DNA of 64,000 nt from Trichosphaerium sp. ATCC 40318 (GCA_038496445.1 JALMLS010000207.1:54490-118489), one strand, 5' to 3'. Positions 10,763 through 54,540 are shown, counted from the stretch's first letter. Program-made: numbers and translations. The notes: generated by a model not told the origin, from the letters alone.

Positions 10763-11593
10763 CTATCCAAAAAATCCACCTGACTCGTCTGAGTCTACCT
10801 CTAGAGGCAGATCCCATTCTCCAACATTGGATGGGTCAAGCCATCCTAGCATATATGTTCCTTCAGCATAGTTTGCATAGTCATAACATAAAACCTCTAG
10901 CATCTCAGCGTAGTGTATTTCTGAATCAAACATCCTATCATAATGATCTGGCGTTCTCCACCAACCATCCTCAAAACCACCCCAATAATAGTCAACAGCA
11001 ACAAAACCAGAGTTGTGAACAACGATACCCAGTCGTTGTAGTGGTTTAGGAGAATCAAAACACTTTCTAGAGCAATCGAAGCAAATCCTCTCGACATCAA
11101 GTCCACGAGATAAAGGATGATAAAAATGTGATTTCTCAGCGTTACAAATAGCGCATGGGTCATCTTCTTTATAGACTTCAGTTTCTGAGACATCTACTAT
11201 CTCTTGTAGTCTTGTAGACATATACCCATCTTCAGACGCAAACTGGTCCCATAGGGAGTCTGTGTACTTCATTTGGGTGCCATAATCATAACACAGGACG
11301 AGTTTGTATTGTTTACGTCTAACGCTCTCCAACAACCTTGGCCTGAGCTTTTGCATTACGTACAGTACTACAGCGTCTTTTAAGAACCATTCTTGGCCAA
11401 GTGTTGATTGTTTGATGGTATTACACAAATGGTTATTTACACAAAGCATACGCACAATCGCAGGCGGCTCGTCTTGTACCAACAAGTCTAACAGCAAGAA
11501 AATGATATCTGCTGGAATATTTCCTAAACTCCATGCTTCTTCTTCTGTACACTCTTGTCGCATTTTAAAATGCGTAGAACTAGTACTGGACAT
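10763..11593 (-). CDS. Intronless F-box-like / CxxC-CxxC protein, paralogue A
   Basis: 276-aa ORF with F-box-like LGNIPADIIFLLLDLL...RMLCVN and CAIC...CFDC. Paralogue of 25398..26237. Confidence 0.75.
   Translation of the reverse strand: MSSTSSTHFKMRQECTEEEAWSLGNIPADIIFLLLDLLVQDEPPAIVRMLCVNNHLCNTIKQSTLGQEWFLKDAVVLYVMQKLRPRLLESVRRKQYKLVLCYDYGTQMKYTDSLWDQFASEDGYMSTRLQEIVDVSETEVYKEDDPCAICNAEKSHFYHPLSRGLDVERICFDCSRKCFDSPKPLQRLGIVVHNSGFVAVDYYWGGFEDGWWRTPDHYDRMFDSEIHYAEMLEVLCYDYANYAEGTYMLGWLDPSNVGEWDLPLEVDSDESGGFFG
11372..11555 (-). repeat. 184-bp inverted repeat arm (partner 25454..25637)
   Basis: The reverse complement matches 25454..25637 with two synonymous mismatches. Confidence 0.9.
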
Positions 11594-11990
11594 GGTGTTT
11601 ACGTAAATAGAACAATTTAAACTAAGAAAAGACCGCTACTTTCACGCACAGTTTTAACATTATTCTCTGAACTTGTGTCAACTTCTTTATTGTTCGTAGT
11701 ACCATCGTAATGAACCTAATGCACCAATCATTGTATTAAGGCTTGCGACTAGTTGTGAAATATGTTATGTGAATGAGACTATTGACAATAAAACGATTGG
11801 TTCTCAGGAATATGGTTTTTTTCTAACTACGCCGTTTAGAACCTTTAATGAAACTGTCTTCAGTATATAACATTAACAGTATTTGTGTGGCGATATCTGC
11901 AAACAAGGTGGTAGGCTACAATAACTCGGTACATCGTAACACTTCAAATCATACATTTATTCTCTAAGAACCTAGGTGCTTGACAAACAT

Positions 11991-14900
11991 TCACATCAAA
12001 TGACCACAAAGGACATCAAATGTCTCAGAACCTGAGCAAATAGCGCTAAAATCTTTTACGAGAGAATAAAATCGACGTTCTGCAGAAACTCTAAAAACCA
12101 AATTAGTACGTATTGTTTCTACAAGACAAATTTTTTACCTATACAGTGCAGCAGATAACATTTCTCTGTGTTGAGCACCTCCACTCCTTGATGTAGTACC
12201 ACTCCAAGAAGAATCAAGGAAACCAGTTTCATTCAACAAGCTGTTAATGACACTCTGATGCAAGCCATACCGATGTACTATAAACAAATGTGAATTTGTT
12301 TTTAAGGAATTTCAAAAAGACAAAAAGACAAAATAGCCACAACGTACTAAGACCATATAATAAATTAGATAGCTTAGGTCTTGCTCTAAAGCTATCTTGA
12401 CGAGCCAAGGACTATTAAATCGTAAGTATATAAACAACAAGGCCTCCATTAAAATATTTCCTTCACAGTTAACCACTTACCAATAAAATAGCTCTTGTCA
12501 ATCGTGCTGCATTGTCTCCACTCAAGACTTCCTTAACAAATGCTACCCAAGCACCACTAGTTGAATGCTTTCCAAAAAGCAGTGTGTTGAGGCAAAGAGA
12601 TATGCCGGTCAAGACATCCGGATCTAAAGAAAAACTAAGCAAAAAGCACCAATGTTTTGGAGTACAATCGTATAAAGAAAGCGCAGATGATCCTAGTGCC
12701 ACCGCTGTTGAGGCTATAAACCGTGTATTCTGCTGCACAAAGAATAAAGGATCTATCTTTGTTGTGTTTAATAAGAATTCAAAAAATCCAGCCACTAACG
12801 GCACATTGTGTTCAAGGTTACCTCGAAAAAAAAATTACTAAAAACAGACAAAATGTACTAAGTTTTAATGTATGTAGCTCGTATAGATAGAGGAAGGTAT
12901 TGTATACGTACTTTGTTGTAGAAAAGCAACTGTTTTGTTGGTAATTTGGATCAGTAAACTTGACAACTCGGTCCGAGCAGTTTCAGCTCTTCCAAAAAAT
13001 TCTAAGAAGATGTTATCACTAAAAGTAGTCGAGTTGAAACATACGCATAAGCAAGGATATTACTTGCAAACACACTGGTAGTGGGTTTACATCATAACAA
13101 GCTAATAATCTAGGAATAAGACCAAATGCAAGAGGAGTACTTTGTTGCTTCATCTGTCCAATAGCGACTGAATAAACTTCATAAAGTTTTTCAATTACCA
13201 AACCATCTTTTTTAGAAACATACGAATTTTGAACGCGTTGAAGCAGTGCCCAGAGTTTCTTAATGTTTATCAGTACGTGTAAAAAGGAGAGAATACATGA
13301 AGAGAAAGTAGCTGACCTGAAGTATTACTAACAAGGCATGTGGTTTCGCTTTAATGAATGTTGAGTGTAGAACACGAAGTTCTCTGAGTACTATAAACTG
13401 CATTTGTTCTGAAACACCTTGGTCAATAGCACGTGTCAAATTTGTATTTATAGGAGCTATAATATGTTCCATAACACTCAACATTTGTGACTGTTCCATC
13501 TGAGATGTTAACACTACTATACCCTCGGATATATCCATTCTATCGTCTACCTACAAATAGTGTAAGAAATCAACAAAAAAAACTGCAGCAAGCTCAGTAC
13601 TTTGAGAATATCGTTCGCTTTTGTGAATGTTGACACTATTTTCTCGACAAGCCCTGTAGGCACTAAAAGAGGTCCACAACGTAAACATAAATCGTGTAAA
13701 GCGTGTGCTAAATTAGTTTAACTAGATACGCAACAAACCTCAGTGTGTACCTGCTGCTGTATTCACAGCAGGGTGTCTCCCAAATGAGGCCAGAATGAAT
13801 TCAATGATTGGTGTTATTAGCTTGTCTCCATTGCTACTATGAGCCAACCACTTTCCACTATTACCTGCACAAGCTATTGTTAGCGCATTGAAAATTGATT
13901 GGTAATTACCGATTAATTTTAGTGAAGCTTGTCTTAGTAAAGGATGCGCTGGATATTGTAATACTTTTACAACTAATGGTTCGAGCATATGACTATGTTC
14001 TTTTGTGACATATCCTGAGCACAACATTAAAAAAAAAAAGTAGGAACAGGAAGGTAAGCGATTGAAACAAAAAAACAATAAAAAATATGAGAATATAAAA
14101 AACTCTACCTGTTGTGGAAGCTAATGTGAACACTGTGGCTTCAAGTTCATACCAAGTCTTAAAAGAATCAAGAGCATTTACCAATGGTAAAATAAAGTTA
14201 GGCACATGCATAAAAAGCATGATTGCTCTGAGCGCTTTAGGCAGTTCACTCCTAAACTCTTCAAATGATAGTTGTAATTCTTCATCTTTTTTTGAATCAT
14301 CAGTAAGACTGTTGCCAATAGTTAGTGTGTATACGTACCTTGCCACTTTGTAAAATCCGGTGGATACGAACATTGGACAATAATAGCTTGTAGAACCTGA
14401 TTAAAAAGAGGTAAAAGCTGCAATAGACCATTAGCTCTTCAAAAAAAAAGCAATTGCACTTCTTACACGTTGTCTAGCATCCTGATCATTCTCGCTCATA
14501 TGTGATTCAAGAATTCGCCAAACAGGAAGACATAATGATATAATCTAAGTGATTTAGGTGGTTTCCGAGTGAGAACTCTTTGATGTACCCTTTTGTCTTC
14601 ATTACGCATCAGCGTCAACAAAAAGACTAACAGCTGTTGAATCTCTGTGGCTAATTCAGATGTTATCCCACCAATAATAAGAGCGGTATCTGCTTCGGCA
14701 ACACCAGTAATAAGTAATGCAATTGAGTAGCAGTAACCTTGATTTCGAGCTAACAAATAAAAAGTCAAAAAAAAAGAAGCGTGTTTACGGAACGCATACC
14801 AGCTACTGCTTGACTATAACTGCCTTGTAGTTCCGAGAGTTTTTGAAGAATTCCTCGGACCGCATCTACATTATCAAGCCCAAAACCAAGGGTACGTTGA

Positions 14901-16151
14901 TGAAGAGATTTGGCAGACTTTAATACAAGTTAGCATAAAAAAGGGTAGCAAAAAACGTGCCATAAAATTCTGACCACTTGTGCGTCTTGTCAAAGCGTCC
15001 AGTAGCACCTCACATGCAGGACTGTATAGATCAGGTAATAGAGCGCAAGAAAATACAGTGTATAGGATATTTGATTGTAATAGTGTCCTACAAAATAGTC
15101 AAAAAAGGCATTACAGTGATGTGTACGTTAAAGGAATCGAAAAATCAAAAGTCGGACAAATCCAGTTCTTGAGGCACTCTAAGGCAGCTGACTTTGTAGT
15201 TATAGCATCGAGTGTATTTTGTTGTTGTAAAACTGCGAGTATAAGGCGTAATAATTGGTCTACATTGGCCATGAGCATCTTTTTTATTGTAGATCTAAAA
15301 ATTCAATTATTTCCAGAAACAAAGTAGTAAAATACCTCCTATCGTATCCCATTTGAGCTGAATCAAGCTCTACAGGCATCATACCAAATATCTCAAGCAC
15401 AAGCGTCCTTATGGGTGTAAATTAAGAGCTACAAAGAGTAAGAAGTTAAAAAGACGTTATAACTGATAAAAAAAAGTAACATACCATAGTTTCTAGCGTG
15501 CTGCTGCTAGCAGCACCGCATACCTTGTTGCGTCTGGAGACGTTGCTGTGCATAGCGACAGCAAGCGCTGGGGAAACTCCACACTTGCAGTTCTAACGCC
15601 TAAATGAAGGGTGAGGATTTTTTTGATTTGACTGATGTTACCGGCTGAAGCCGTCGCCATCGCCAAGCGGTTGCGTATTAATGGCGTGTGGCTTTGTTTC
15701 ATGCATAGGTCTAACATTTGAGCTGTCATGTTTTGTTGGTCTTGAAATGATAATTTAGTTCTACAACGCGTTAATATTATGAACAAAGGCTAGTTACGCA
15801 CAAATCAGACCGTATTTTGGAGCATAGTATTTGTGCGGCGCAAAAGCGCACAGGAAGAGCCTGTAACGATTATAAGTATTGGTAGCAATGGGATACAACC
15901 ATACCTGCTCGTTCAAAAGTTGCACTCCAATTGCCCAAGCGTTATTTGTTTGTATAAATGCGCGTAAGTACTCATTAGCTTCTTTAATTTGTGCGTGGTT
16001 CGATGTTTGGGAAGTAGTTACTATTATGGCCTATCGTACATAAATTCTCGACCATCGTTCTCAGTTGGTACCTGTTTAACAGTTGCTAGCATCGGTAGTT
16101 GTTACGTATCAATTTGTACTTTATTTGACAGTTTCCATTTTCACTGGCCAT
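11991..16151 (-). CDS. Importin-beta family karyopherin (importin-13 / transportin-3-like), multi-exon
   Basis: IBN_N-like KEANEYLRAFIQTNNAWAIGVQLL and VRFCAAQILCSKIR; HEAT-like helical exons (TWYELEATVFTLAS, LLRQASLKLIG); C-terminal RRFYSLVKDFSAICSG. The start codon is approximate. Confidence 0.85.
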
Positions 16152-16192
16152 GGTTGTACACGTCACTACTACGCAAGGGTGTTCCATATAAC

Positions 16193-19100
16193 ATGGAAAC
16201 AAAAGAAACAAAAGAAAAGCCTGTTAAAGTGGTACGATTGGTATAAAAACACTGTGTTAACTTTTTGAAGGTCGTAGTAGGTGCAGAGCGCGTGGGCAAG
16301 TCACAACTGGTTTCTACATTTATTAACGGCGAATACTGGGATGATGAAGATTTCGATAGCTTTGGTGATGGTACGCTAACTGATTAAAGCTCTAGACCAT
16401 TTGTAGAACCCCAAAAATTGTTTTTATTTACTACAAATTATAGAAGCGATGTGGGGCTTTCCACCACCTGCAGAGGAGGACGAAGAAGACATACCGTTCG
16501 TAGTTGATGGAAAAGACGCTGAATTAAGTATACTCGATACAAAAGGCACTACCAAATTTAAAGCAGTGCGTAATCGCTTCCAGTAGTGGCAAACAAATTA
16601 CTGACGTATTTATTTAAAGTGGTTTTCTTGGGCTGACATAATTGTCGCTGTTTACAGCGTTAACGACAAGTCATCCATTGATTTTATTCGTAACGTAACA
16701 AAGGCTTTGTCTATTCACAAAACATACTACAGAGATTGCGTACCTCTCATCATTGTTGGCGCGAAAGGCACTTTTATTTTCTCTATTAATTTTTAGATTG
16801 TTTATTTGTTACGTACTTACTGACACCTTAAAAATAGCTGATCTACAACAAACAGTACAAAAGAAATATGCGCTAAGAGTTGCTCAGAAAATCAATTGCG
16901 ATCACGTGTTCTGTAGCTCACTAAAAATGCAAAACGTTACCCAAGTTTTTGAACAATGTATAAAATTAGCGCGTGTTATGCGGGCGCCGTCATCACTAAG
17001 AGTACCTAAATCAAGACACTCAACAAGATCTGTATGGAGCCTGATGTACTTTATCAGTACTAATACATTGCCTAGTTCTCTAGCGAATCCTCCCATTCAA
17101 GGGATACAAAAGATGTACTTCGAACACCTCGTACACCACGAACAGCACGTTCTACTAGCTCTCAAGCCATGATAGTGGATGAAGCTTCCTCTACTGTAAG
17201 TGGCTTGTTGGTACGAAAGTATATACCTTATTTTTTTGTATAGGAAACTACAGCTAGTAGGTCATATCAGAGCACAGTGAGTGAAGTTATGTTGTTTTTA
17301 TCTAAATCGCCAATTAGAAAACCAGCTCTCCGAGTCAAAGTATAATTCATTGGCATAAACTAAATAAGGAAGCAGAAGCCACAATTAATACGTTTGCGCG
17401 TACTGCAGCATCAAATCCCTATGGAATACGCGAACTGAGGTACTAGCTTAAGCTCTTTACCATCTCATTTAACACAATCTAGAATAACAGATTCAGCATT
17501 ACCTTTAGCTTCATCTACCAAATTATCGTCAATTCTTCCAACACTAGCCAACTTGGGTACTGTTATGATATTCAGTGCGAAGATTGGTGATACAGATGAT
17601 CAATGTGAAGCATTTTACAAGGTGCGAGTTTGAAAGACAAAGGTTTGTGCTAACAGTTGACTAAGGCACTTGGAGTACTTCCAGCACTTCAGCACTTAAC
17701 ATTAGTCAATATCGGAATGAACGATCAAGGAGCTATGTACCTTGCCGAACATGTTTTAAGATGCTCAAACAGTCTAACATGTCTTGATATTGGATCTGTA
17801 AGTGGCAAACAGCGCTTCGAAAAGAATAATATTGGTGATGAAGGTACTACAATGTTGTTAATATTCTCCAAGCTGTTCCTTTGTTTATATCCTTTTTGAC
17901 TCCTTTCCAGGATGCTCAGCTATATTTACTGCATTGTACGGTGCTCAACCATCGCATGTTAGTCTTCGGCGTATAGCAAGGAAAACAAACTCCATACTAT
18001 CAACACTGCGTATGGCAGAAAGTATAGATGGTGCTAGTATTACTTTGGAGAAGGGCTTTGATGCATTGCTGAGTATGCTTGATACAAACGCTACTCTAAA
18101 AGTACTGGATATCAGAAAAATGAATGCTTTCAAACGAGATAAGAAAAAGAGGCACCCAGTAAGGTACAACGTTACTTCTGCGAGAAAAATATCTCCTGTG
18201 CCTTGTTTCTTGTTCTAATGTTTGGTAGGGAGATAATGTTTTCTCTTCGCGATAAGAATACCACATTGACTAACCTACATATGGGAAACGTGATGACGTC
18301 ATCAGATCGCAAAGTAATCACTATCGGCGTAGTAAGTAATTACTTTGCAATCAACTAAATTCTTACAGTAACTTAACACGGAATATAGGAACATACTTTC
18401 GATAATGGTGCATTACAGCTTGCTAGCATGCTACTTCAAAATACAACCTTGGAAATTCTAAATGTTGAAAACAATCAGCTTGGTTTTAATGCTGATAAAA
18501 AGCATGTTGAAGAGATTGGCAAGGCGTTAAAGTTGAATACTACAGTGACATATCTTAATCTATCATGTAACCAACTTGATGATACTGCTGGCACGTGTTG
18601 GATTATGTTCTGTATACTAGCATTCCACACTAACATTGCTTAAGGTATTGCGTTGTTCGATGGATTATCGGAGAATACCACTCTTAAAGAGCTTCACATT
18701 GCCGATAATTTGCTTACCGATAAAGTTGGAAAGTCGTTACAAAGATGTTTTAGTCAGAACTCTACTTTACAAGTACTCAACTTGAACTACAATCAAAATC
18801 TTGGCAAGGTGTGCTTTCATTATTTGTAAGGTTCGCTTATTATGTTGAAAAAGGGTATTGGATTCTTATGTGATGGTCTTCGAGACAATAAAGGATTGCA
18901 AAGACTGTCTATTGACTTCACAGGCATCAAGACAAAAAGTACTTTAGAGTCTATTGTAGGCATGCTACAACATAATGCAGCACTTGAAGAGTTGTTTATG
19001 GGTATCAATGACAACATTCAAGGCACGTCAAAAATTGTTTATTGCATCAACTTCTTACTGACTGTTGTGTTGCTGTAGATGATGATGTCGGTGTCATTTG

Positions 19101-22100
19101 TGAGGCGTTGAGATATAACTGTACTCTATCAAAGCTTAAGTTGAGTAGGAGTAAGAATATAACTTCGAAGGTTCGCTTAGTAGTACACTTCGAAAGTACC
19201 TAATTCTGATGTTAAGGCGCTTTATCACTTTTCTTATTTATTCCAATACAACATCTCACTGAAGTATATTTATCTTCAAAAGACTCAAATAACTGTCAAC
19301 ATTGATGATGAAGCTGTTGAAGAGTTTCTTGAAGCATGTCGTAGACATACGCCTATAGAGGCTGTTTATATTGGCACGTGTTTAGGAGCCTTCTTTTCAG
19401 AAGTAAAAACGAGCTTAACATTTTTAGGTAAAGAAGAGCGTTCGACTGCATATGCACGTGAGATGTCAATGACAAAAGAAGGGAATTCTCCTATAGAAGA
19501 AAGGATTAGAAAGTATTCTGAGATTGTTAATAGCAAAATATATCCAAGAACAAAGCTAGGACCTTCTTTAGAATCACAAGCTTTATCAAAACTAGAGTCT
19601 TATGATTTAGATCTTAGTTATCTTCCCCTAACAACCTTACCAGAAAAACTACAGTACGTCTTTGTTCTATTTATTCTGCTTCTCTTATCCTTATTCTTAG
19701 GATGTTATCTGAGTTGTTACAAGCTACAGAGTTGAATATCTTTGGATGCGGATTGACTATCCTTCCTGAATGGTTTGGTGGCGTATTTCCAAATTTAAGA
19801 TATTTAAATCTATCCAACAACGATATGTCTAATGAAACTGTTCGTACCTTGAAGCCATTATGTAATCTACGACAATTAGAGTATTTGAACATCTCGTACG
19901 AGATTAGTAGTAATGATCCCTTTGAACTAACAATTTTTTTTCTAGTCGTTGTAACTTGGTTACTATCCCTCATGATGTCAGCAAGCTTCAAAAACTTAAA
20001 GTGTTGAACGCTTGTTACAATCGGTTAACAAATTTCTACGTGGTTAAGGATTGCTTGGCACTAACAGATCTTCTTCTGCGAGGAAACTTATTCAATCACC
20101 TTCCAAAGCAGCTTACAGAGATGGAAAATCTTAAAGTTCTGGATGTAATGGACAACACCTTGGAGTACGCATATATCATGACTGTGGCTGCTACTAATAT
20201 CTCCTTAGTGGCCTTTGGTTTGCAGCTATAATACAAGGTGTTGAACCACCGCCTAAGCAACAGAGTGACGAATGGAAGTACTTTACTCGTGGCAATAAAT
20301 GTATGAAGAATTTGCTTGCTTTACTATCAGAGTATGGTAATGAAGCTGAACAAGAAGAGTACAACCGTGTTAAACTCATGTTCGTCGGAGATGGAGGTGT
20401 TGGTAAGCTCAAATTTTATCACGTGATATTCCACGTGATAGGATTTGTCGCAAGTACCTACTGTAATTTTTTTTGTAGGAAAGACAAGCTTAAAACGTTA
20501 TCTCATTGACGATAAACCTTATCACACAAAGAAGAGTATTGCTACAGATGGTATTGAAATTGAAGAAATGAGATTTAAGGATAAGACAAAAGCCAAGATA
20601 TCGTTTGATTGCTGGGATTTTGCTGGACAAGAGATATACTATGCGACACATTCTATTTATTTATCAGAGAATGCTCTTTATCTTGTTTGTTTCAAACTTG
20701 TTGATACAAACTTAAACGTTTTGGAATACTGGTTACGTAGTATAAGATTACGCGCTTTCTATGCTCCTATTGTTATTGTCGGTACACATGTAGATGAAGC
20801 AGAGAAGAAGGGAACAAAATATGTGAGTGATACGCTGAAGAAAGTCAAGAAAAGATGCAAGAAGTTTAGAATACATAATGTTATTTTTTCTATCAATAAT
20901 ATAAAGAAAGGCAAAGATATTGCCAAGTTGAAGAACTCTTTATGTCAGATATCTAGAACTAGGAAGCTTATTGGGTTTAAGATACCTAAGAGTTATGGTA
21001 AACTCATCGATTATGTTGTTAGGCTAAGAAAGAGGTACGCAATGAATTTTATGTATTTTATTGGTATTTTTTTTATTCATCATTTTTACTAGTGGAAGTC
21101 GACCGTTTATGGATCAATCAGAGTTCCTTGGCAACTGTGAAAGTTTTGGAATATCACAACAGCATCTTGCGTTAAAGACACTCCATAACGTAGGACATGT
21201 TATGCATTTCGCAGAGGACAAACAGATTAACGATTTGGTTATTGTTGATCCTCAATTTTTGGTTAATCTCATGGCTGAAGTTGTCAGTGTAAAACAGAAT
21301 TATGTCAAAGCAGGCAAAATATCTGGTGAGGATATAGTACGCGTATTTAGGCGTAAGAATTTCCAATTCAAGGAGTCATTCAATGTACTACTTCAAAAGT
21401 TTGAAGTGATTTATAAGCTTCCTGCACAAAAAGAAGGAGAGGCACGAATATTTTTTTTTCAGATACGATTCTTTGTTACTGACAAGTCTCATAGCAAGAT
21501 GTAATTTTGGTACCGTGTATGTACCCAGCACAACCGAACAAGGCTTTTCTGAAAGGGAAACATGATATTCTAAACTCAAATAAGCAAAGCACGTTTAAGC
21601 GCATCTATGAGTTTGACTTTTTGCCTTTCGGGTTTTTTTCGAGGCTTTTATGTCGTATTTTGGCATTACAACATGTTGAATACGAGCACCCTTGGAAGTA
21701 CGGATGTATAGTATCACGGTACGTTCGAAATCCATCCACCCTAAATGTGAGCTTAAATTCTATGTAGAGGTGATCAAAAAGCTGTAATGGAATATGACAC
21801 AGACGCAAGAAGACTTGACTTAGTTTTAATATCAGACACTTCCCAGTCATACTTGTTTTCGCAGTTGATACAATCTATAGACTCTCTTATTACTGTATTC
21901 TATCCTGGTAAGAGTGACATGGTTAAGATAACAGTACCAATAGTACAAACTGAGTTGAAGAGGCTTGAAAACCTACAAAACTATCAATCGGCAGAAATAG
22001 AGGCTGTTACAAAAACTTATGATGAACTGGTTTCTGTATTCATGTCAGGGAATCCTATTGTGTATGTAAACGAAATACCAGTTCCTCTTGAAGAGATTGC

Positions 22101-24757
22101 ACCGGATATAGCTCTAAGTCATCTTCCAATAATCGAAGATTTGACTACAGGCAAAAAAATTGGAGAAGGCGGGTTTGGTGTTGTTTACAAGGTAAGAACG
22201 CTTTCGTTGTATGTGTTTATCATGGTTCTTAACAATCTCTAGGGTACCATGGGGAAAGATGTCATTGCAATTAAAGAACTTAAGCTACGCCAAAATGACA
22301 AGGACGAAGATGATGCTGAAGGAAAGGAGCACATAGAAAAGTTTAGAGAATTCCATCATGAGGTAGCACCCCGCTTTAATCACGTTGCTTGTGATCATCT
22401 AACATGTTATTTAGGTATATCTCATGAGTGAAATGAATCATCCAAATCTTGTGAAGTTATACGGCATTGCCTTGAGTCCATTAAGAATGATTCTTGAATA
22501 TGTTCCTAAAGATGCTCTTTCTTCTGCACTTCACAACAAAGAACTTGAAATGACATGGACGTTACGACTACGTATTGCACTTGATGTCGCAAAGGCAATG
22601 TGGTACTTATCTAGTATACAGCCACCAGTACTGCATCGTGATTTAAGGTCTCCAAACGTTTTTGTACGTATTTCTTTCTGTGCTGCAAGTATTTTAATTT
22701 TCTGCAATAGATGCAATCCCTTGATCACAACGATCCTGTTGTCGCCAAGGTAGGTGATTTTGGACTTGCTCAACATGCTAGTCCTACTTTGAATGAGTTA
22801 CTACCAACGTGGCAGGTAAGAAAATGAAACATTACAACATGTGCTTATTTGTTTAGTGGTTGGCACCTGAGGTTGTCGATCCTGAAGCAAGTTCTTATGA
22901 TGTAAAGAGTGATACATACTCGTATGCCATTGTAATGTGGGAAGTGTGTTCAAGAGAATTACCATTCTCAGAGTATGATGGAGATAGATATGTTCAGCGT
23001 ACAACACAAACTCTAACAATGGCCCAACTGGCGTACGTTAAATTTACGTTTTGGATTGATTCTTATTAATTCTATCAGAGATACCACCTTGATGGATCAG
23101 TTACTTCACACTGGTTGTCAGCTTCAAGATGATGGTAAAACTGTCATACGCGAAGAGTTTAAAAAACGTGAAATGATAGACGACATTATCTACAAAGACC
23201 TGCGCCCTACTGTCCCTTCAGGCACGTGATAATGTTTATTTCAGAAGCTTGAATATTTTGAGACAGCAAATTTGTTCTTAAGTTGTTAATAGATGCACCT
23301 AATTGGTTTGGAAAACTCATCGAAAGATGCTGGGTTCGTGACCCAAGAGCTCGCCCTGAATTTGACATAATTGTCAAAGAACTAAGTCAACACGTTGGAG
23401 AGACTATAGTACCTCTTGAGCTCCCTGATGCTCTAGTTGTTCAGCAAATAGAATCTTCAAAACCAGTTAACACAACACGTTTAAGTGCACCAAAAGGATT
23501 GTACGCTTGTCCTTTTGTTGAATTATCTTACAGCTCATTAGCCTCCATTTTGGTGATACGTTTGTCGTATCTGCGTGCGTTGTTGAGAATTTTATTTGGG
23601 CTGGTTGCAACAATGGGAGCATAGTAATTATTGATCCAAACGCAAGTGCAGCTTTTATGTGCTTAGAATACACCTTTAATATTATGTACAGGATATGACT
23701 ATTACCAAGAGTACATCTGTTACTGTTAAAGTAAAAGGTAAACGCGTTAATCAAATAGCATACTATGGTGATAAAGTATGGATTGCTTCAGAAACGTCCT
23801 TGACATTATGGCATCCAAAAAAAGTATGTTATCAACAAATTGCTTCTATTTGTGTACTAACGTTTTTGAAAGCAAACTGAGATTAAGACTGTAGATACTG
23901 GACTTGTTCTTTCTATGGCTTGTGTAGGAGATATTGTATTATATGGAAACAGCCGTGGTTTTGTACATTTTGCTACGGTAAACCTTGTGGATGCCTCTTA
24001 TTTCTAGTAATTCTAACAATTTTAAAGGCTGCAGATGGTCATGTATTACCTGAAGCTATTATGATAGGTAATGCAGTTTTATGTTTATGCGTTGTCCCTA
24101 TAGACAACAAGAACTACTTATGGGTTGGTAAATATGGCGGACTTGATGTGTATGACTTAGAAACAAATGTTTTGGTTCATAGCATATCTGTACGAGTTTT
24201 TTTTTTCTTTCGTCGATGAAAAATTCTGTTAATCTTTTTATAGGAGGGTCTCAGCGGGATGCTCGTTAGTCTGCTTGTAGCCAATAATTGTGTATGGTGT
24301 GCTGACCACAAAGGAATCTCCATTTTTGATATACAGGCACGTGACTTATCATCTTCATTGAAATTAACGCTTCACATAGACATTTAAGCTATTGCGCCAG
24401 CTTAGAGCTCATCCAAGCCACATTACAGGTTTGTACTTACTTGACATAAGTAGCTTTATTTTCTAAGTATATTTTATAGCTATGGCTGTAGTTGAGGGAG
24501 TCAAAGGCAGGCTCAATGTTTGGTCAAGTAGTTTTGATAATCTTATCCTCGTGTGGGATGTCGAGGTGCGTTGAAGTTTGTTTAATAGTGCAATATTGAT
24601 ATGTGTTTAATAGACTAGAAAATGCCTTCAGGCACATCGAGATATCCACAAGGATTATATTAGAACTATCCTAGATTGTGGTGAAACAATAGTACTCACA
24701 GGTTCTCGAGATCGTTCTGTAGTATTTTGGACATACAATCCACGTACGTTGATTTAA
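16193..24757 (+). CDS. Roco kinase: N-terminal small GTPase - RI-type LRRs - LRRs - Roc - COR - TKL kinase - WD40; ~38 introns
   Basis: N-terminal GTPase: VVVGAERVGKS, ILDTKG, IIVGAKAD, FCSS. LRRs include LEILNVENNQLG and LRYLNLSNN. Roc: KLMFVGDGGVGKTSL, WDFAGQEIYYATH, VGTHVD. COR: DLVIVDPQFLVNLM, FLPFGFFSRL. Kinase: IGEGGFGVVYKG, IAIKEL, HRDLRSPN, DFG, WLAPE. WD40: VWSSSFDNLILVWD, LTGSRDRSVVFW. Confidence 0.93.
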
Positions 24758-25397
24758 AGTCGTCGATTCAACTGTATGATTGTGCATATGTGGATCACGT
24801 GATAATTATTCTAAGTTAGCTAACTTTTTGTCAACACAGAGGAACAGCTCAATCAAGAAGTTATAAAAGATCGTTCAGCTAAGAACGAACGTGATGTTGC
24901 TCAGTATCGTTTTTCTGATAATCTACGATTACAGCGTAAGCTTGGTTCTTCAAGACTCGGTGGATTAGTTCATGATAGTAATAATAACAGTGGAGGAACG
25001 ACAACAAAGAAAGAGAATAGTAAAGAGAAGAAGAAGGATAAAAAAAAGAAAAAAAAGAAAAGTTCAGGTAAAATAAAGTCAAAGAAATAAGGACTTTGCA
25101 AAAAAGGATGTAACTTCCCATATTTATTAAAGATGCACCCGATAACAATAAAAAAGGGTCATATCTTGTTATGCAACTAAGATCCTCGTATGTCCGACCA
25201 CTCAAATCTAAAAAAATGCCACGTGACATTATTTTTGTTTATCAAAATTTATTCGTTTTGTGCCACTGTAGGGAAGTGGTCTTGACCGCCTTTTTGGTGT
25301 AGCTGTAAGCTAGACTTCCTTATACCACTTGACATGGAGCCTAAAACTAAGTCTTTGGAAGTCAGTGGCTGAGGTTGTCATAAAGTTCTCAACACCA

Positions 25398-26237
25398 ATG
25401 TCAACCGATATTGGTGTACACGGTAGTAAGGCTTTACAAAATCGTAGAGTAACAGAGTGCACAGAAGAAGAAGCATGGAGTTTAGGGAATATTCCAGCAG
25501 ATATCATTTTCTTGCTGTTAGACTTGTTGGTACAAGACGAGCCGCCTGCGATTGTGCGTATGCTTTGTGTAAATAACCATTTGTGTAATACCATCAAACA
25601 ATCAACACTTGGCCAAGAATGGTTCTTAAAAGACGCTATGGTGTTGTACTATTTTTATATGCTTGATCGACGCACTTTAGAGAACGTCAGACGTAAACAA
25701 TACAAACTCGTCGTGTATCATGGAGATGGCCCCACCATAAAGTATTTAGACTCTCTTTGGGACCGATTTGCATCTCCTGGCGGTTTGATGGCAGAAAGAC
25801 TTGATGCAATACTGGCTCAGTCAAAAATCAATGTCTATGTACAAGATGGTCCATGCAGCATTTGTAAGGCTGAGAAAACACGTTTCTGTAACCCTTTACC
25901 TCGTGGACGTAAATATGAGAAAGTTTGTTTTGATTGCTCTAAAAAGTGCTTTGATTCTCCTAAACCACTACGACGACTGAATATCATACTTCGTAACTAT
26001 TTCACTGTTGTTATTTATCACATGTGGACCTGTCGGATGAAATTGCCAAAGGCTGTGGAGCAGACTTTTGACAAAGAAAAACAATATTGTGCTGTTATGG
26101 AGTTTTTACCTCATCAAGGTTCAGTGTTGTTTGACAATGGAACTTTCTTTTTAGGATGGTTGGATCCACGTTGTGGCAGTGAATGGGAGCTACCCTCAGC
26201 TAAATCGGATAATGACTCTAGTGCGCCCAAAAATTAG
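25398..26237 (+). CDS. Intronless F-box-like / CxxC-CxxC protein, paralogue B
   Basis: Homologous over its length to 10763..11593. Likely ATG is 25398: context aacaccaATGTCA versus aacaccATGTCC in the paralogue. Confidence 0.75.
   Translation: MSTDIGVHGSKALQNRRVTECTEEEAWSLGNIPADIIFLLLDLLVQDEPPAIVRMLCVNNHLCNTIKQSTLGQEWFLKDAMVLYYFYMLDRRTLENVRRKQYKLVVYHGDGPTIKYLDSLWDRFASPGGLMAERLDAILAQSKINVYVQDGPCSICKAEKTRFCNPLPRGRKYEKVCFDCSKKCFDSPKPLRRLNIILRNYFTVVIYHMWTCRMKLPKAVEQTFDKEKQYCAVMEFLPHQGSVLFDNGTFFLGWLDPRCGSEWELPSAKSDNDSSAPKN
25454..25637 (+). repeat. 184-bp inverted repeat arm (partner 11372..11555)
   Basis: Direct manual alignment with the reverse complement of 11372..11555. Confidence 0.9.
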
Positions 26238-50729: not shown

Positions 50730-53700
50730 AGAAACACCTTCTACAAGCTCATCAACCACTGCTTCACAGCCAACTGTTGCACCAACAACGGATGCTCCAA
50801 CTATTGCTGCACACAACAACAGATGCACCTAACTGGTACTTGCTTGATATTTTTTAGCTTTCTTTCTAACTGTGATAGATGCGCCAACTACACCTACAAC
50901 TGCAGCCCCTACCACAGCCACACCAACAACTGATGCTCTTACTGCAAGTACTCCAACAATAGAACTGCTAACAACAGCTTCAACTACAGATGCTCCTATC
51001 ACCAAAACCCAGCTCCAACCGCCAATGTACCTACGACTGAAGCTCCAACAAAAGCACCAACCACAAAGGCCCCTATAACTGATGCTCCTACCACTGTGGC
51101 ACCTACTACAGACGCACCAACAACTGAGACAATAAACTATAGATGCTCCAACCACTGATGCACTGACAGCAGAGGCTACAGCGAAAGCGCCAACTACTGG
51201 CACTCCAACAACCAAGGGGCCAACAAAAGCTGCGCCAACCACAGTAACACCTACTACAGATGCACCAACCACCGAAGCCCCAACGACTGAGGCTCCTACA
51301 ACTGTAGCGCCTACTATAGAAGCACCAACAACAGAGGCTCCAACTACAGATGCACCTACCACAGAGGCACCAACGACTGAAGCTCCTACCACGTATGCGC
51401 CTACAACCGAAGCTCCAACGACAGAGGCTCCTACCACTGAACCACCAACGACAGAGGCACCAACAACAGAGGTTCCAACCACTGTAGCGCCTACTACAGA
51501 GGCACCAACACCTGAAGCACCAACTACAGAGGCTCCTACCACTGTAGCACCTACTACAGATGCACCTACCACCGAAGCACCAACGACAGAAGCACCAACA
51601 ACTGAGGCTCCTACAACTGGTACTCGATCGATATAATTTTTACTTTTCTCCTAACAGTGATAGATGCACCAACTATAGTAGCACCAACTACAGATGCACC
51701 TACAACAGATGCTCCAACAACTGAAGCTCCAACAACAGAGGTGCCAACAACAGAAGCACCAACTACTGAGGCTCCAACAACTGAAGTGCCAACGACAGAA
51801 GCACCAACAACTGAGGCTCCTACTACAAAGGCACCTACTATGGAACCTCTAACTACCGAGGCACCAACAACACAGCATCCAACTACAATGCCACCAATGA
51901 GATCTCCACCAACTACAGAAGCGCCAACTACTGTAGCGCCTACCACAGAGACACCAACAACTGAGGCTCCAACTACTGATGCTCCAACTACAGAGGCACC
52001 TACAACTGTAGCGCCAACAACGGAGGCTCCAACCACAGAGGTTCCTACAACTGCTGCGCCAATAACAGAAGCGCCAACAACACAGCATCCAACTACAATG
52101 CCACCAATGACGCCTCCACCAACTACAGAAGCACCTACAACTGAAACTCCAACTACTGAGGCACCAACAACTGGTACTTGATTTATATTGTTATCTTTTT
52201 CCATCTAACAGTAATAGATGCACTAACTACACAAGCACCAAGCACAGAAGCTCCAACAACTGCAACCCCTACCACTGATGCGCCAACAACGGAGGCTCCT
52301 ACAACTGCAGCCCCTACTACTGAGGCTCCAACAACTGAGGCTCCTACAACTGTAGCACCTACTACTGGCTCCAACTACAGAAGCACCAACTACTGAGGTA
52401 CCTACCACTGAAGCTCCTACAACTGTAGCACCTACTACTGAAGCCCCTACTACGGAAGCTCCAACTACAGGAGCTCCTACAACCGAAGCTCCTACCACAG
52501 AGGCGCCTACAACTAAGGCACCAACAACAGATGCACCAACAACCGAAGCTCCAACTACTGCTGCTCCTACCACGGATGCACCTACAACCGAAGCTCCAAC
52601 GACAGAAGCACCAACTACAGAGGTTCCAACAACATTGGCGCCAACGACAGAGGCACCAACAACTGACACACCAACAACTGAAGCACCTACAACTGTAGCG
52701 CCTACCACTGAAGCACCTACTACATTGGCGCCTACTACGGAGGTTCCCACGACTGAGGCACCAACTACAGTAGCTCCTACGACTGAAGCTCCAACGACTG
52801 AAGCACCAACGACTGAGGCTCCAACCACTGTAGCGCCTACTACAGATGCACCAACAACTGATGCACCAGTGACAGATGCTCCAACAACTGAAGCCCCAAC
52901 GACTGAGGCTCCAACTACAGAAGCACCAACTACTGAAGCCCCAACTACAGAGTCGCCTACAACTGATGCACCAACAACTGAGTCACCAACTACAGCTACT
53001 CCTACAACAGCAGCACCAACAACTGAAGCTCCTACAACTGTAGCACCAACCACTGCAACCCCTACAACTGTAGCTCCTACAACTGACGCTCCAACTACTG
53101 ACGCTCCAACTACTGAAGCTCCAATTACAGAGGCTCCTACAACTGAAGCTCCAACTACGGAACCTCCAACGACTGAAGCACCAACTACTGATACTCCAAC
53201 TACTGATGCTCCTACAACTGAAACACCTACTACTGACGCTCCAACTACTGATGCACCAACTACAGAGGCTCCTACAACTGTAGCACCAACAACTGAAGTG
53301 CCAACAACTGAAGCTCCAACCACAGATGCACCTACTACTGAAGCACCAACAACAGTAGCACCAACTACAGATGCTCCAACCACCGAATCGCCAACTACTG
53401 AGGCTCCAACAACTGAACCACCTACAACTGATGTGCCTACGACTGAAACTCCAACTACTGAAGCACCTACAACTGTAGCACCAACAACTGGTACTTTGTA
53501 TTTTACTTTCCAAAGCAACTAACTTTCTTTGTAGATGCACCAACTACAGATGCCCCAACAACTGTTGCACCAACAACCGAAGCACCGACTACTGAAGTCC
53601 CTACTACAGAATCGCCTACAACTGATGCGCCAACAACAGAGGTTCCTACCACTGAAGCTCCTACAACTGTAACACCTACTACATTGGCGCCTACTACAGA

Positions 53701-54540
53701 GGTTCCCACGACTGAGGCACCAACTACAGTAGCTCCTACGACTGAAGCTCCAACCACAGATGCACCTACGACTGAGGCGCCAACAACCGAAGCACCAACT
53801 ACTGTAGCCCCTACTACAGAGTCGCCTACAACTGAAGCTCCAACTACAGCGGCTCCTACAACTGATGCACCAACAACAGAGTCACCAACTACAGCTACTC
53901 CTACAACAGAGGCACCAACAACTGAAGCTCCAACTACTGAAGCTCCTACTACAGAGGCTCCTACAACTGTAGCACCAACCACTGCAACCCCTACAACTGT
54001 AGCACCTACTACTGACGCTCCAACTACTGAAGCTCCTACTACAGAGGCTCCTACAACTGTAGCACCAACAACTGAACCTCCTACAACTGAGGCTCCAACT
54101 ACGGAGGTTCCTACTACTGATGCTCCTACAACTGGTACTTTTTATTTGCTTTTTATGCATACTAACTTCGCTTGCAGAGTCTCCTACAACTGAAGTTCCA
54201 ACAACTGAAACTCCTACTACAGAAGCACCAACCACTTTAGTGCCAACCACTGAAGTACAACTACAGCTTCTCCAACCACCGAAACCCCTACAACTGTAGC
54301 GCCTACTACTGACACTCCAACTACAGAGGCTCCTACAACTGTAGCTCCTACAACTGCTACCCCAACAACTGCGGCTCCAACAACGGAGGCATGAAACTCC
54401 AACAACAGAGTCTCCAACAACAGAAGTGCCTACAACAGAAGCTCCAACTACTGAGGCTCCTACCACGGAGGCATGAAACTCCAACGACACTTGCAACTAC
54501 AACTGAAGCTCCTACTAAATCTCCAACTACAAAGGCTCAA
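50730..54540 (+). repeat. Mucin-like coding tandem array, 15-nt unit encoding T(E/D/V)APT, interrupted by introns
   Basis: Long (TEAPT)n ORFs at 51657..52181, 52635..53522 and 53684..54193. Phase-1 introns at 50836-50878, 51620-51663, 52174-52217, 53491-53534 and 54135-54177. Frameshifts and stops occur, mostly at the array edges. Confidence 0.9.

Follow-up and report, generated by a model that had tools for sequence, protein, structure and literature searches.

The locus at positions 16193–24757 of a 64,000-nucleotide stretch of DNA from Trichosphaerium sp. ATCC 40318 (JALMLS010000207.1:54490-118489; the whole stretch is called the window here) raises the question of whether a Roco kinase can carry, in the same chain as its Roc GTPase domain, a second and Ras-like G domain at the N-terminus. 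The original prediction had answered yes, reading the locus as a small GTPase spliced into leucine-rich repeats (LRRs) and a Roc-COR-kinase-WD40 protein. Our analysis found that the DNA is read most parsimoniously as such a dual-GTPase fusion, and this reading is presented here as a prediction: the encoded protein is likely to consist of a G domain, a linker, ribonuclease-inhibitor-like (RI-type) LRRs, ordinary LRRs, Roc, COR, kinase and a WD40-like end.

The window sequence is eukaryotic (37% G+C), with short exons and introns of about 40–80 nt. The gene was modelled with a splice parser that combined codon log-odds, trained on the long open frames of the window, with donor and acceptor matrices taken from homology-supported introns. 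The parser was run with GT donors alone and then with GC donors permitted at a penalty. GT-only parsing gave bad solutions at six places, whereas permitting GC donors gave a clean model in which the frame opens at ATG 16193 and runs to the stop at 24755, with 37 exons (median intron 50 nt), a coding sequence of 6609 nt and 2202 codons, and no internal stop. For the Pfam, PDB and relative searches the exons of the spliced model were taken singly, and their concatenation was used for frame continuity and motif location. The N-terminal part of the model is made up as follows.

16193..16231, plus strand: exon 1, start codon at the open frame's first ATG and 13 residues running up to G-domain beta-1; then a GTACGA donor
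16271..16370, plus strand: exon 2, P-loop GAERVGKS (G1) and degenerate switch I; Pfam Ras 18.5 bits, Roc 17.7 bits
16444..16565, plus strand: exon 3, acidic insert, beta-2/3, DTKG (G3) then Thr; Ras 13.4 bits; donor GTGCGT, branch TACTGAC
16620..16767, plus strand: exon 4, shortened switch II, alpha-3, beta-5, up to the 'GAK' of G4; Ras 14.8 bits
16768..16837, plus strand: GC-AG intron of 70 nt whose removal is required to keep the G domain intact; GCACTT at 16768, AG at 16836–37, no usable GT donor
16838..17031, plus strand: exon 5, end of AKAD (G4), CSS (G5), C-terminal helix and start of the Ser/Arg-rich linker; Ras 16.8 bits

The Pfam Ras profile (PF00071) matched in order on four scanned stretches (16271–16372, 16446–16571, 16620–16765 and 16849–17031), covering profile positions 3–27, 40–65, 72–111 and 121–159, respectively. 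The four matches are strictly collinear, and the simple sum of their single-exon scores is 63.5 bits (profile 3–159). Joined, exons 1–5 give 603 nt, or 201 codons, with no stop; GAERVGKS lies at residue 17 and DTKG at residue 78, so that both a G1 motif of the form GxxxxGK[ST] and a G3 motif of the form DxxG are present. The G domain starts 13 residues past the start codon, as in free small GTPases. All four motifs from which a complete small GTPase had been proposed (GAERVGKS, DTKG, AKAD and CSS) were found, although the intron that interrupts AKAD is of the GC-AG and not the GT-AG type.

The domain was compared with Ras at the level of motifs, the Ras side being established knowledge. The P-loop Lys and Ser, the Asp and Gly of DxxG, and the Lys and Asp of NKxD are retained. 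The full set of catalytic and switch residues (Gly12, Thr35, Gln61 and a complete NKxD) was not found: Glu-Arg occupies the positions of Gly12 and Gly13; switch I has no equivalent of Thr35 (a Ser is present in DFDSFGD) and is followed by an acidic insert of about 20 residues; Thr stands in the Gln61 position after DTKG, as in Rap and as had been noticed earlier; switch II is about four residues shorter than in Ras; AKAD replaces NKxD, with Ala at Asn116; and the G5 motif is SSL in place of SAK. The domain is thus predicted most likely to bind nucleotide with little hydrolysis, and its residues suggest a nucleotide binder that is slow or locked rather than a classic switch. The terms 'switch' and 'cascade', proposed for a built-in upstream GTPase, are too strong for this domain because the residues for hydrolysis and those of switch I have been lost; the proposal has weak support, in that the nucleotide-binding motifs are kept.

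No one subfamily (Ras, Rho, Rab, Arf or Ran) is indicated by the single exons, which gave mixed and weak PDB matches: exon 4 to RASL12, the N-terminal GTPase domain of Miro1 (E 0.06) and RAD/REM, and exon 5 to Rac1 and ARAC7. The Rho insert is not present in the N-terminal G domain. Two possible origins, as a copy of the gene's own Roc domain or as a trimmed G-alpha, found no support: the N-terminal domain shows no similarity to that Roc past the P-loop, and none to the G-alpha domain of a Clastostelium recurvatum Roco protein (P0020, see below). Metagenome scans with the exon 5 protein and with a 36-nt exon word were both blank.

An intact G domain requires the GC donor at 16768: with intron 16768–16837 retained, translation would stop at TAG 16794. 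Of the 36 introns in the best model, 6 are of the GC-AG type (16768–16837, 18591–18644, 19023–19078, 21442–21494, 23222–23292 and 23642–23691), and their donors (GCACGT, GCACGA, GCAAGT and GCACTT) mirror the usual GTACGT/GTAAGT. At two of them, 21442–21494 and 23222–23292, the tblastn alignments of 10 and 9 homologues, respectively, end and resume exactly at the intron with contiguous protein coordinates. The GC solution at 23222 also restores the kinase spacing RPxxPxxxPxxxxxLIxxCW, whereas the GT alternative inserts 10 extra residues. These two homologue-supported introns make the GC donor at 16768 credible. Confident GT donors score 4.5 on average (sd 1.6), and the context of the 16768 donor, AAG|GCACTT, reaches 3.4; 14 nt ahead of the AG there is a TACTGAC branch.

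Downstream of the linker the model runs through a Roco kinase, with the following features.

17483..19170, plus strand: RI-type LRR exons; Pfam LRR_6 30.7 and 26 bits
19701..20164, plus strand: ordinary LRRs directly before Roc; Pfam LRR_4 33 bits, LRR_8 24 bits
20209..21034, plus strand: Roc GTPase domain with GDGGVGKT, DFAGQ and THVD; Pfam Roc 72.1 bits
21093..22100, plus strand: COR-A and COR-B; COR-A 66.5 bits, COR-B 26 bits on a partial exon
22150..23400, plus strand: TKL-type kinase with GEGGFGVV, IAIK, HRD, DFG and APE; Pfam PK_Tyr_Ser-Thr 61.6 and 34.6 bits
23542..24757, plus strand: WD40-like C-terminal exons and the first in-frame stop (24755–24757); weak Pfam matches only

The LRR_6, LRR_4/8, Roc, COR-A, COR-B and kinase matches follow one another in the order first proposed. 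Roc is followed directly by COR, as in the Roco family, and LRRs before Roc together with a kinase after COR place the protein with the group-2 Roco kinases (LRRK/Roco4 type). Over this core, tblastn was collinear with many Roco proteins. The best solved relative of the Roc exon is the Roc domain of human LRRK2 (E 4e-19). In a library of 1.84 billion representatives the Roc exon has 5171 relatives at E<=0.001, among which no protein is more than 43% identical to it. The active-site motifs of Roc and of the kinase are intact, and both are predicted to be active. At the WD40-like end the single exons gave sub-threshold matches to WD40 (E 0.0095), Beta-prop_DCAF12 (E 0.0004) and WD40_2 (E 0.051). 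The RI-type repeats have ribonuclease-inhibitor-like proteins, DRC5 and LRRC34 as best PDB matches, and their repeat pattern continues across introns 17622–17665 and 17844–17910. A RanGAP-like identity of these repeats found no support, the best matches being generic ribonuclease-inhibitor-like and axonemal LRR proteins.

The putative join of the G domain to this kinase lies between exon 5 and the linker.

17032..17075, plus strand: predicted junction intron between G domain and linker; GTATGG .. TACTAAT .. CCTAG
17076..17439, plus strand: linker exons (17076–17195, 17244–17276 and 17318–17439), rich in Ser, Thr, Arg and Pro; no Pfam match

The linker is about 90 residues long, Ser/Thr/Arg-rich and predicted to be disordered. 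As had been proposed, its introns (17032–17075, 17196–17243, 17277–17317, 17440–17482 and 17622–17665) are all of the GT..AG type and keep the frame, and the joined coding sequence has no internal stop; the third ends at 17317, one nucleotide later than first given. Intron 17196–17243 is strong (GTAAGT .. TTTTTTTGTATAG), the donor at 17277 is GTGAGT, and intron 17622–17665 is again strong (GTGCGA .. GCTAAC). Among all GT sites, the donors of the N-terminal and linker introns rank in the top 1–15%; the exception, GTATGG at 17032, sits close to the median. The acceptors of these introns fall in the top 13%, and most have a YTRAY branch motif. Two further junction introns, 17046–17083 and 17046–17101, can be drawn, and all three enter the same downstream frame. 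The exact exon 5/linker junction is therefore ambiguous. Retention of 17032–17075 leads to the stop TGA at 17170–17172.

We infer that all of these exons are joined in one mRNA. That the G domain and the Roco parts form one gene is predicted with reasonable confidence, and one gene is more parsimonious than two. Since the nearest upstream gene (importin-like, about 11900–15730) lies on the minus strand, one divergent promoter region (about 15730–16190) would serve the G-domain exons. Several findings weigh against a single gene with an N-terminal G domain. With the exons taken singly, every Pfam Ras match fell under the gathering score of 21.6 bits. The exon 5/linker join is the weakest site, with a donor at background-level score and two alternatives, and codon-usage log-odds fail to separate the linker frame from the read-through frame. 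The G domain rests on the GC-AG intron 16768–16837, which has a poor, A-rich acceptor. In addition, the searches returned no orthologue sharing this N-terminus; the best Roc relatives are 41–43% identical and lack the G domain.

Some of these points would fit two genes, namely a stand-alone atypical small GTPase (16193–17031 plus read-through to 17170–72, about 247 residues) and a Roco kinase starting at ATG 17169, the in-frame join then being an artefact of picking short GT-AG pairs. At the junction three alternatives fit equally, and its donor is weaker than any other of the set; with introns of 40 nt and AT-rich sequence a frame-keeping GT-AG pair is easy to find; ATG 17169, the sole possible start for a separate LRR gene, is in the right frame; and merged neighbour genes are common in databases, as in LRRC45 models with a Rho-family GTPase domain. 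However, this ATG overlaps the unspliced stop TGA 17170–72 (ATGA), so that a separate LRR gene would leave no intergenic space and thus no room for a 3′ untranslated region (UTR), a promoter and a 5′ UTR, whereas neighbouring same-strand genes lie about 300 nt apart. No AATAAA follows 17172, neither CAAX nor any other lipidation motif occurs in the read-through tail, the strong splice sites of 17196–17243 begin just 24 nt past the supposed start, and fusions of this kind are real elsewhere. Two separate genes are therefore considered unlikely.

The weak donor would also suit a single transcription unit in which the junction intron is retained in a regulated way, the spliced form giving the fusion and the retained form a short GTPase ending at 17172. 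The donor is weak beside its neighbours and, with the intron retained, 46 further codons are open before TGA 17170, but this is pure inference, and an mRNA with 7 kb downstream of its stop is normally a target of nonsense-mediated decay (established knowledge); we regard such retention as rather improbable. Least probable is that the G-domain exons are a decaying relic, an untranslated leader or pseudo-exons, with the functional protein starting further downstream. Several canonical residues are lost, a non-GT donor is needed and no subfamily can be assigned, all of which would suit decay. Yet the five exons are open over 201 codons, keep G1, G3 and the Lys and Asp of G4, and are collinear with the Ras profile; a 200-codon open reading frame (ORF) in frame with the main one is not expected of a leader; and GC donors are normal in this gene.

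The single gene, then, may not end where first proposed. The frame is open to the stop at 24755, in agreement with the span 16193–24757, but a perfect GTACGT donor at 24744 overlaps this stop, with a GCTAAC branch after it and CACAG at 24839 as acceptor, so that the stop may be spliced past and the gene may end at 25090.

24840..25090, plus strand: possible additional last exon with a polybasic, lysine-rich tail, reached via intron 24744–24839; open to a stop at 25088

With this intron spliced the model has 2281 codons in all, and an AATAAA lies at 25147, 57 nt past the stop at 25088. Because of this AATAAA and the donor overlapping the first stop, the form ending at 25090 may be the main one. 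The gene predicted from the DNA probably has 37 or 38 exons and encodes a Roco-family kinase of about 2,200–2,280 residues.

About 300 nt separate the Roco gene from the next gene downstream on its strand. Two outward-facing, single-exon paralogous ORFs, 10763–11593 (minus strand) and 25398–26237 (plus strand), flank the importin-like and Roco genes; the right-hand one has no Pfam match. Elsewhere in the window, 51265–54134 consists of about 190 tandem copies of the 15-nt unit CCAACAACTGAAGCT, one strand of which reads as a Pro-Thr-Thr-Glu-Ala-like pentapeptide. This repeat accounts for the GC-rich and strongly skewed composition of the block, which probably encodes a mucin-like repeat protein. 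One ORF looked up as an exact product was not on record.

The original prediction had treated a second G domain in cis as new among Roco proteins. This was an overstatement, since four such proteins are in public databases. Among the 150 closest Roc representatives, about 8 have tandem Roc(-COR) units and 2 have a different G domain upstream; by tblastn none of the 150 best Roc relatives carries a domain like the N-terminus encoded in the window. A stray P-loop was seen at residue 33 of an Arcella relative, which was rejected because there is no G domain there. The first precedent, P0086, is the Pelomyxa schiedti protein KAH3762641.1, annotated 'Rho GTPase', with Rho (Pfam Ras 148 bits), LRR_8, Roc and COR-A/B. 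In the Pelomyxa contig (JAHLWZ010000445.1 2001–8472) a kinase gene is called 8 nt past the Rho-LRR-Roc-COR gene, and the two are probably one gene split by annotation. P0020 is the Clastostelium recurvatum Trinity transcript EP01113_P022441 (2206 aa), with G-alpha, LRR_6, LRR_8/4, Roc, COR-A/B, kinase and WD40; its G-alpha domain (PF00503, 49.9 bits) is over the cut-off and has about 300 residues with a helical insert. Because it is transcriptome-derived, P0020 represents one mRNA. A search seeded with P0086 gave the other two: P0157 from Glandiceps talaboti (LOC144434207), with Ras (174 bits), Ank, Roc and COR-A, and P0166 from a JGI contig (3300016948 Ga0186032_101140), a single uninterrupted 708-codon ORF with Ras (200 bits), Roc and COR-A. 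A look-alike search of the ESM Atlas with the Pelomyxa protein returned just ordinary MFHAS1-like and bacterial Roco clusters.

Fusion of a non-Roc G domain to a Roco protein is thus real, recurrent and rare, and the architecture found in the window is not unique in having one. The G domains concerned are unrelated, which points to independent events. Roco topologies described in the literature include LRR, ARM, ANK, kinase, RasGEF, cNB, myotubularin, DEP, GRAM, PTP, WD40 and death domains and no second G domain (PMC6337361). Targeted literature searches found no description of a Roco protein with a second non-Roc G domain, including the combination in P0020, and the database precedents seem to be undescribed in print.

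Compared with known systems, the predicted protein has the order LRR, Roc, COR, kinase and, as far as its WD40-like end allows, WD40 in common with LRRK2/LRRK1 and Dictyostelium Roco4, and like LRRK2-type proteins it has THxD in place of NKxD in Roc and a TKL-type kinase with all catalytic motifs. It differs from LRRK2 in lacking armadillo and ankyrin repeats; in their place it has a solenoid of RI-type LRRs and, N-terminally, a Ras-like G domain. In LRRK2 itself, Rab partners bind the N-terminal repeats in trans. Clastostelium P0020 has the same layout and nearly the same length, but its N-terminal domain is G-alpha-like and not Ras-like, with no detectable similarity to the G domain studied here, and the Roc domains are 37% identical. 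Pelomyxa P0086 likewise has an N-terminal small GTPase followed by LRR, Roc and COR-A/B, and its locus may encode a full G-LRR-Roc-COR-kinase protein; in contrast, its GTPase is a canonical Rho, it has no RI-type LRR block, and its gene model is predicted from an intron-rich locus. In P0166 and P0157, Roc and COR-A are preceded within the same protein by a complete Ras-family domain with canonical Ras-family scores, but both lack a kinase and RI-type LRRs and are not relatives of the Trichosphaerium N-terminal domain. Miro and other two-G-domain proteins also have two Ras-superfamily G domains per chain, one of them atypical; Miro lacks Roc-COR, kinase and LRR, and the resemblance of exon 4 to it is at noise level and no evidence of kinship.

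How such a protein might work can be sketched tentatively. The N-terminal G domain would be a permanently nucleotide-bound or slowly cycling module, tethered by a flexible, phosphorylatable linker to the RI-type LRR solenoid. By docking on the protein's own repeats, or else on a membrane or partner, it might govern where the kinase is located or how far it is autoinhibited. Such a module would be a cis, hard-wired counterpart of the Rabs that act on LRRK2 in trans, not a fast switch driven by GTPase-activating proteins and exchange factors. As a speculative proposal, the acquisition of an upstream G protein in cis may have happened repeatedly among Roco proteins of Amoebozoa and a few others, the G protein being Ras-like here, a Rho in Pelomyxa and a G-alpha in Clastostelium; such proteins might form an undescribed subclass in which a GTPase-to-Roco-kinase relay is hard-wired, the G domain docking on the LRR solenoid to gate the kinase.

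Given the frequency of GC-AG introns in this gene, gene finders that accept only GT donors will mis-annotate the Trichosphaerium genome. The control of LRRK2 by its N-terminal repeats and by Rabs is a central open question in Parkinson's research, and a Roco kinase with its own N-terminal G domain beside a repeat solenoid would, if true, be a compact model for that control. That Rho and G-alpha domains were fused independently in other lineages suggests a repeated benefit of linking Roco kinases to a second G protein.

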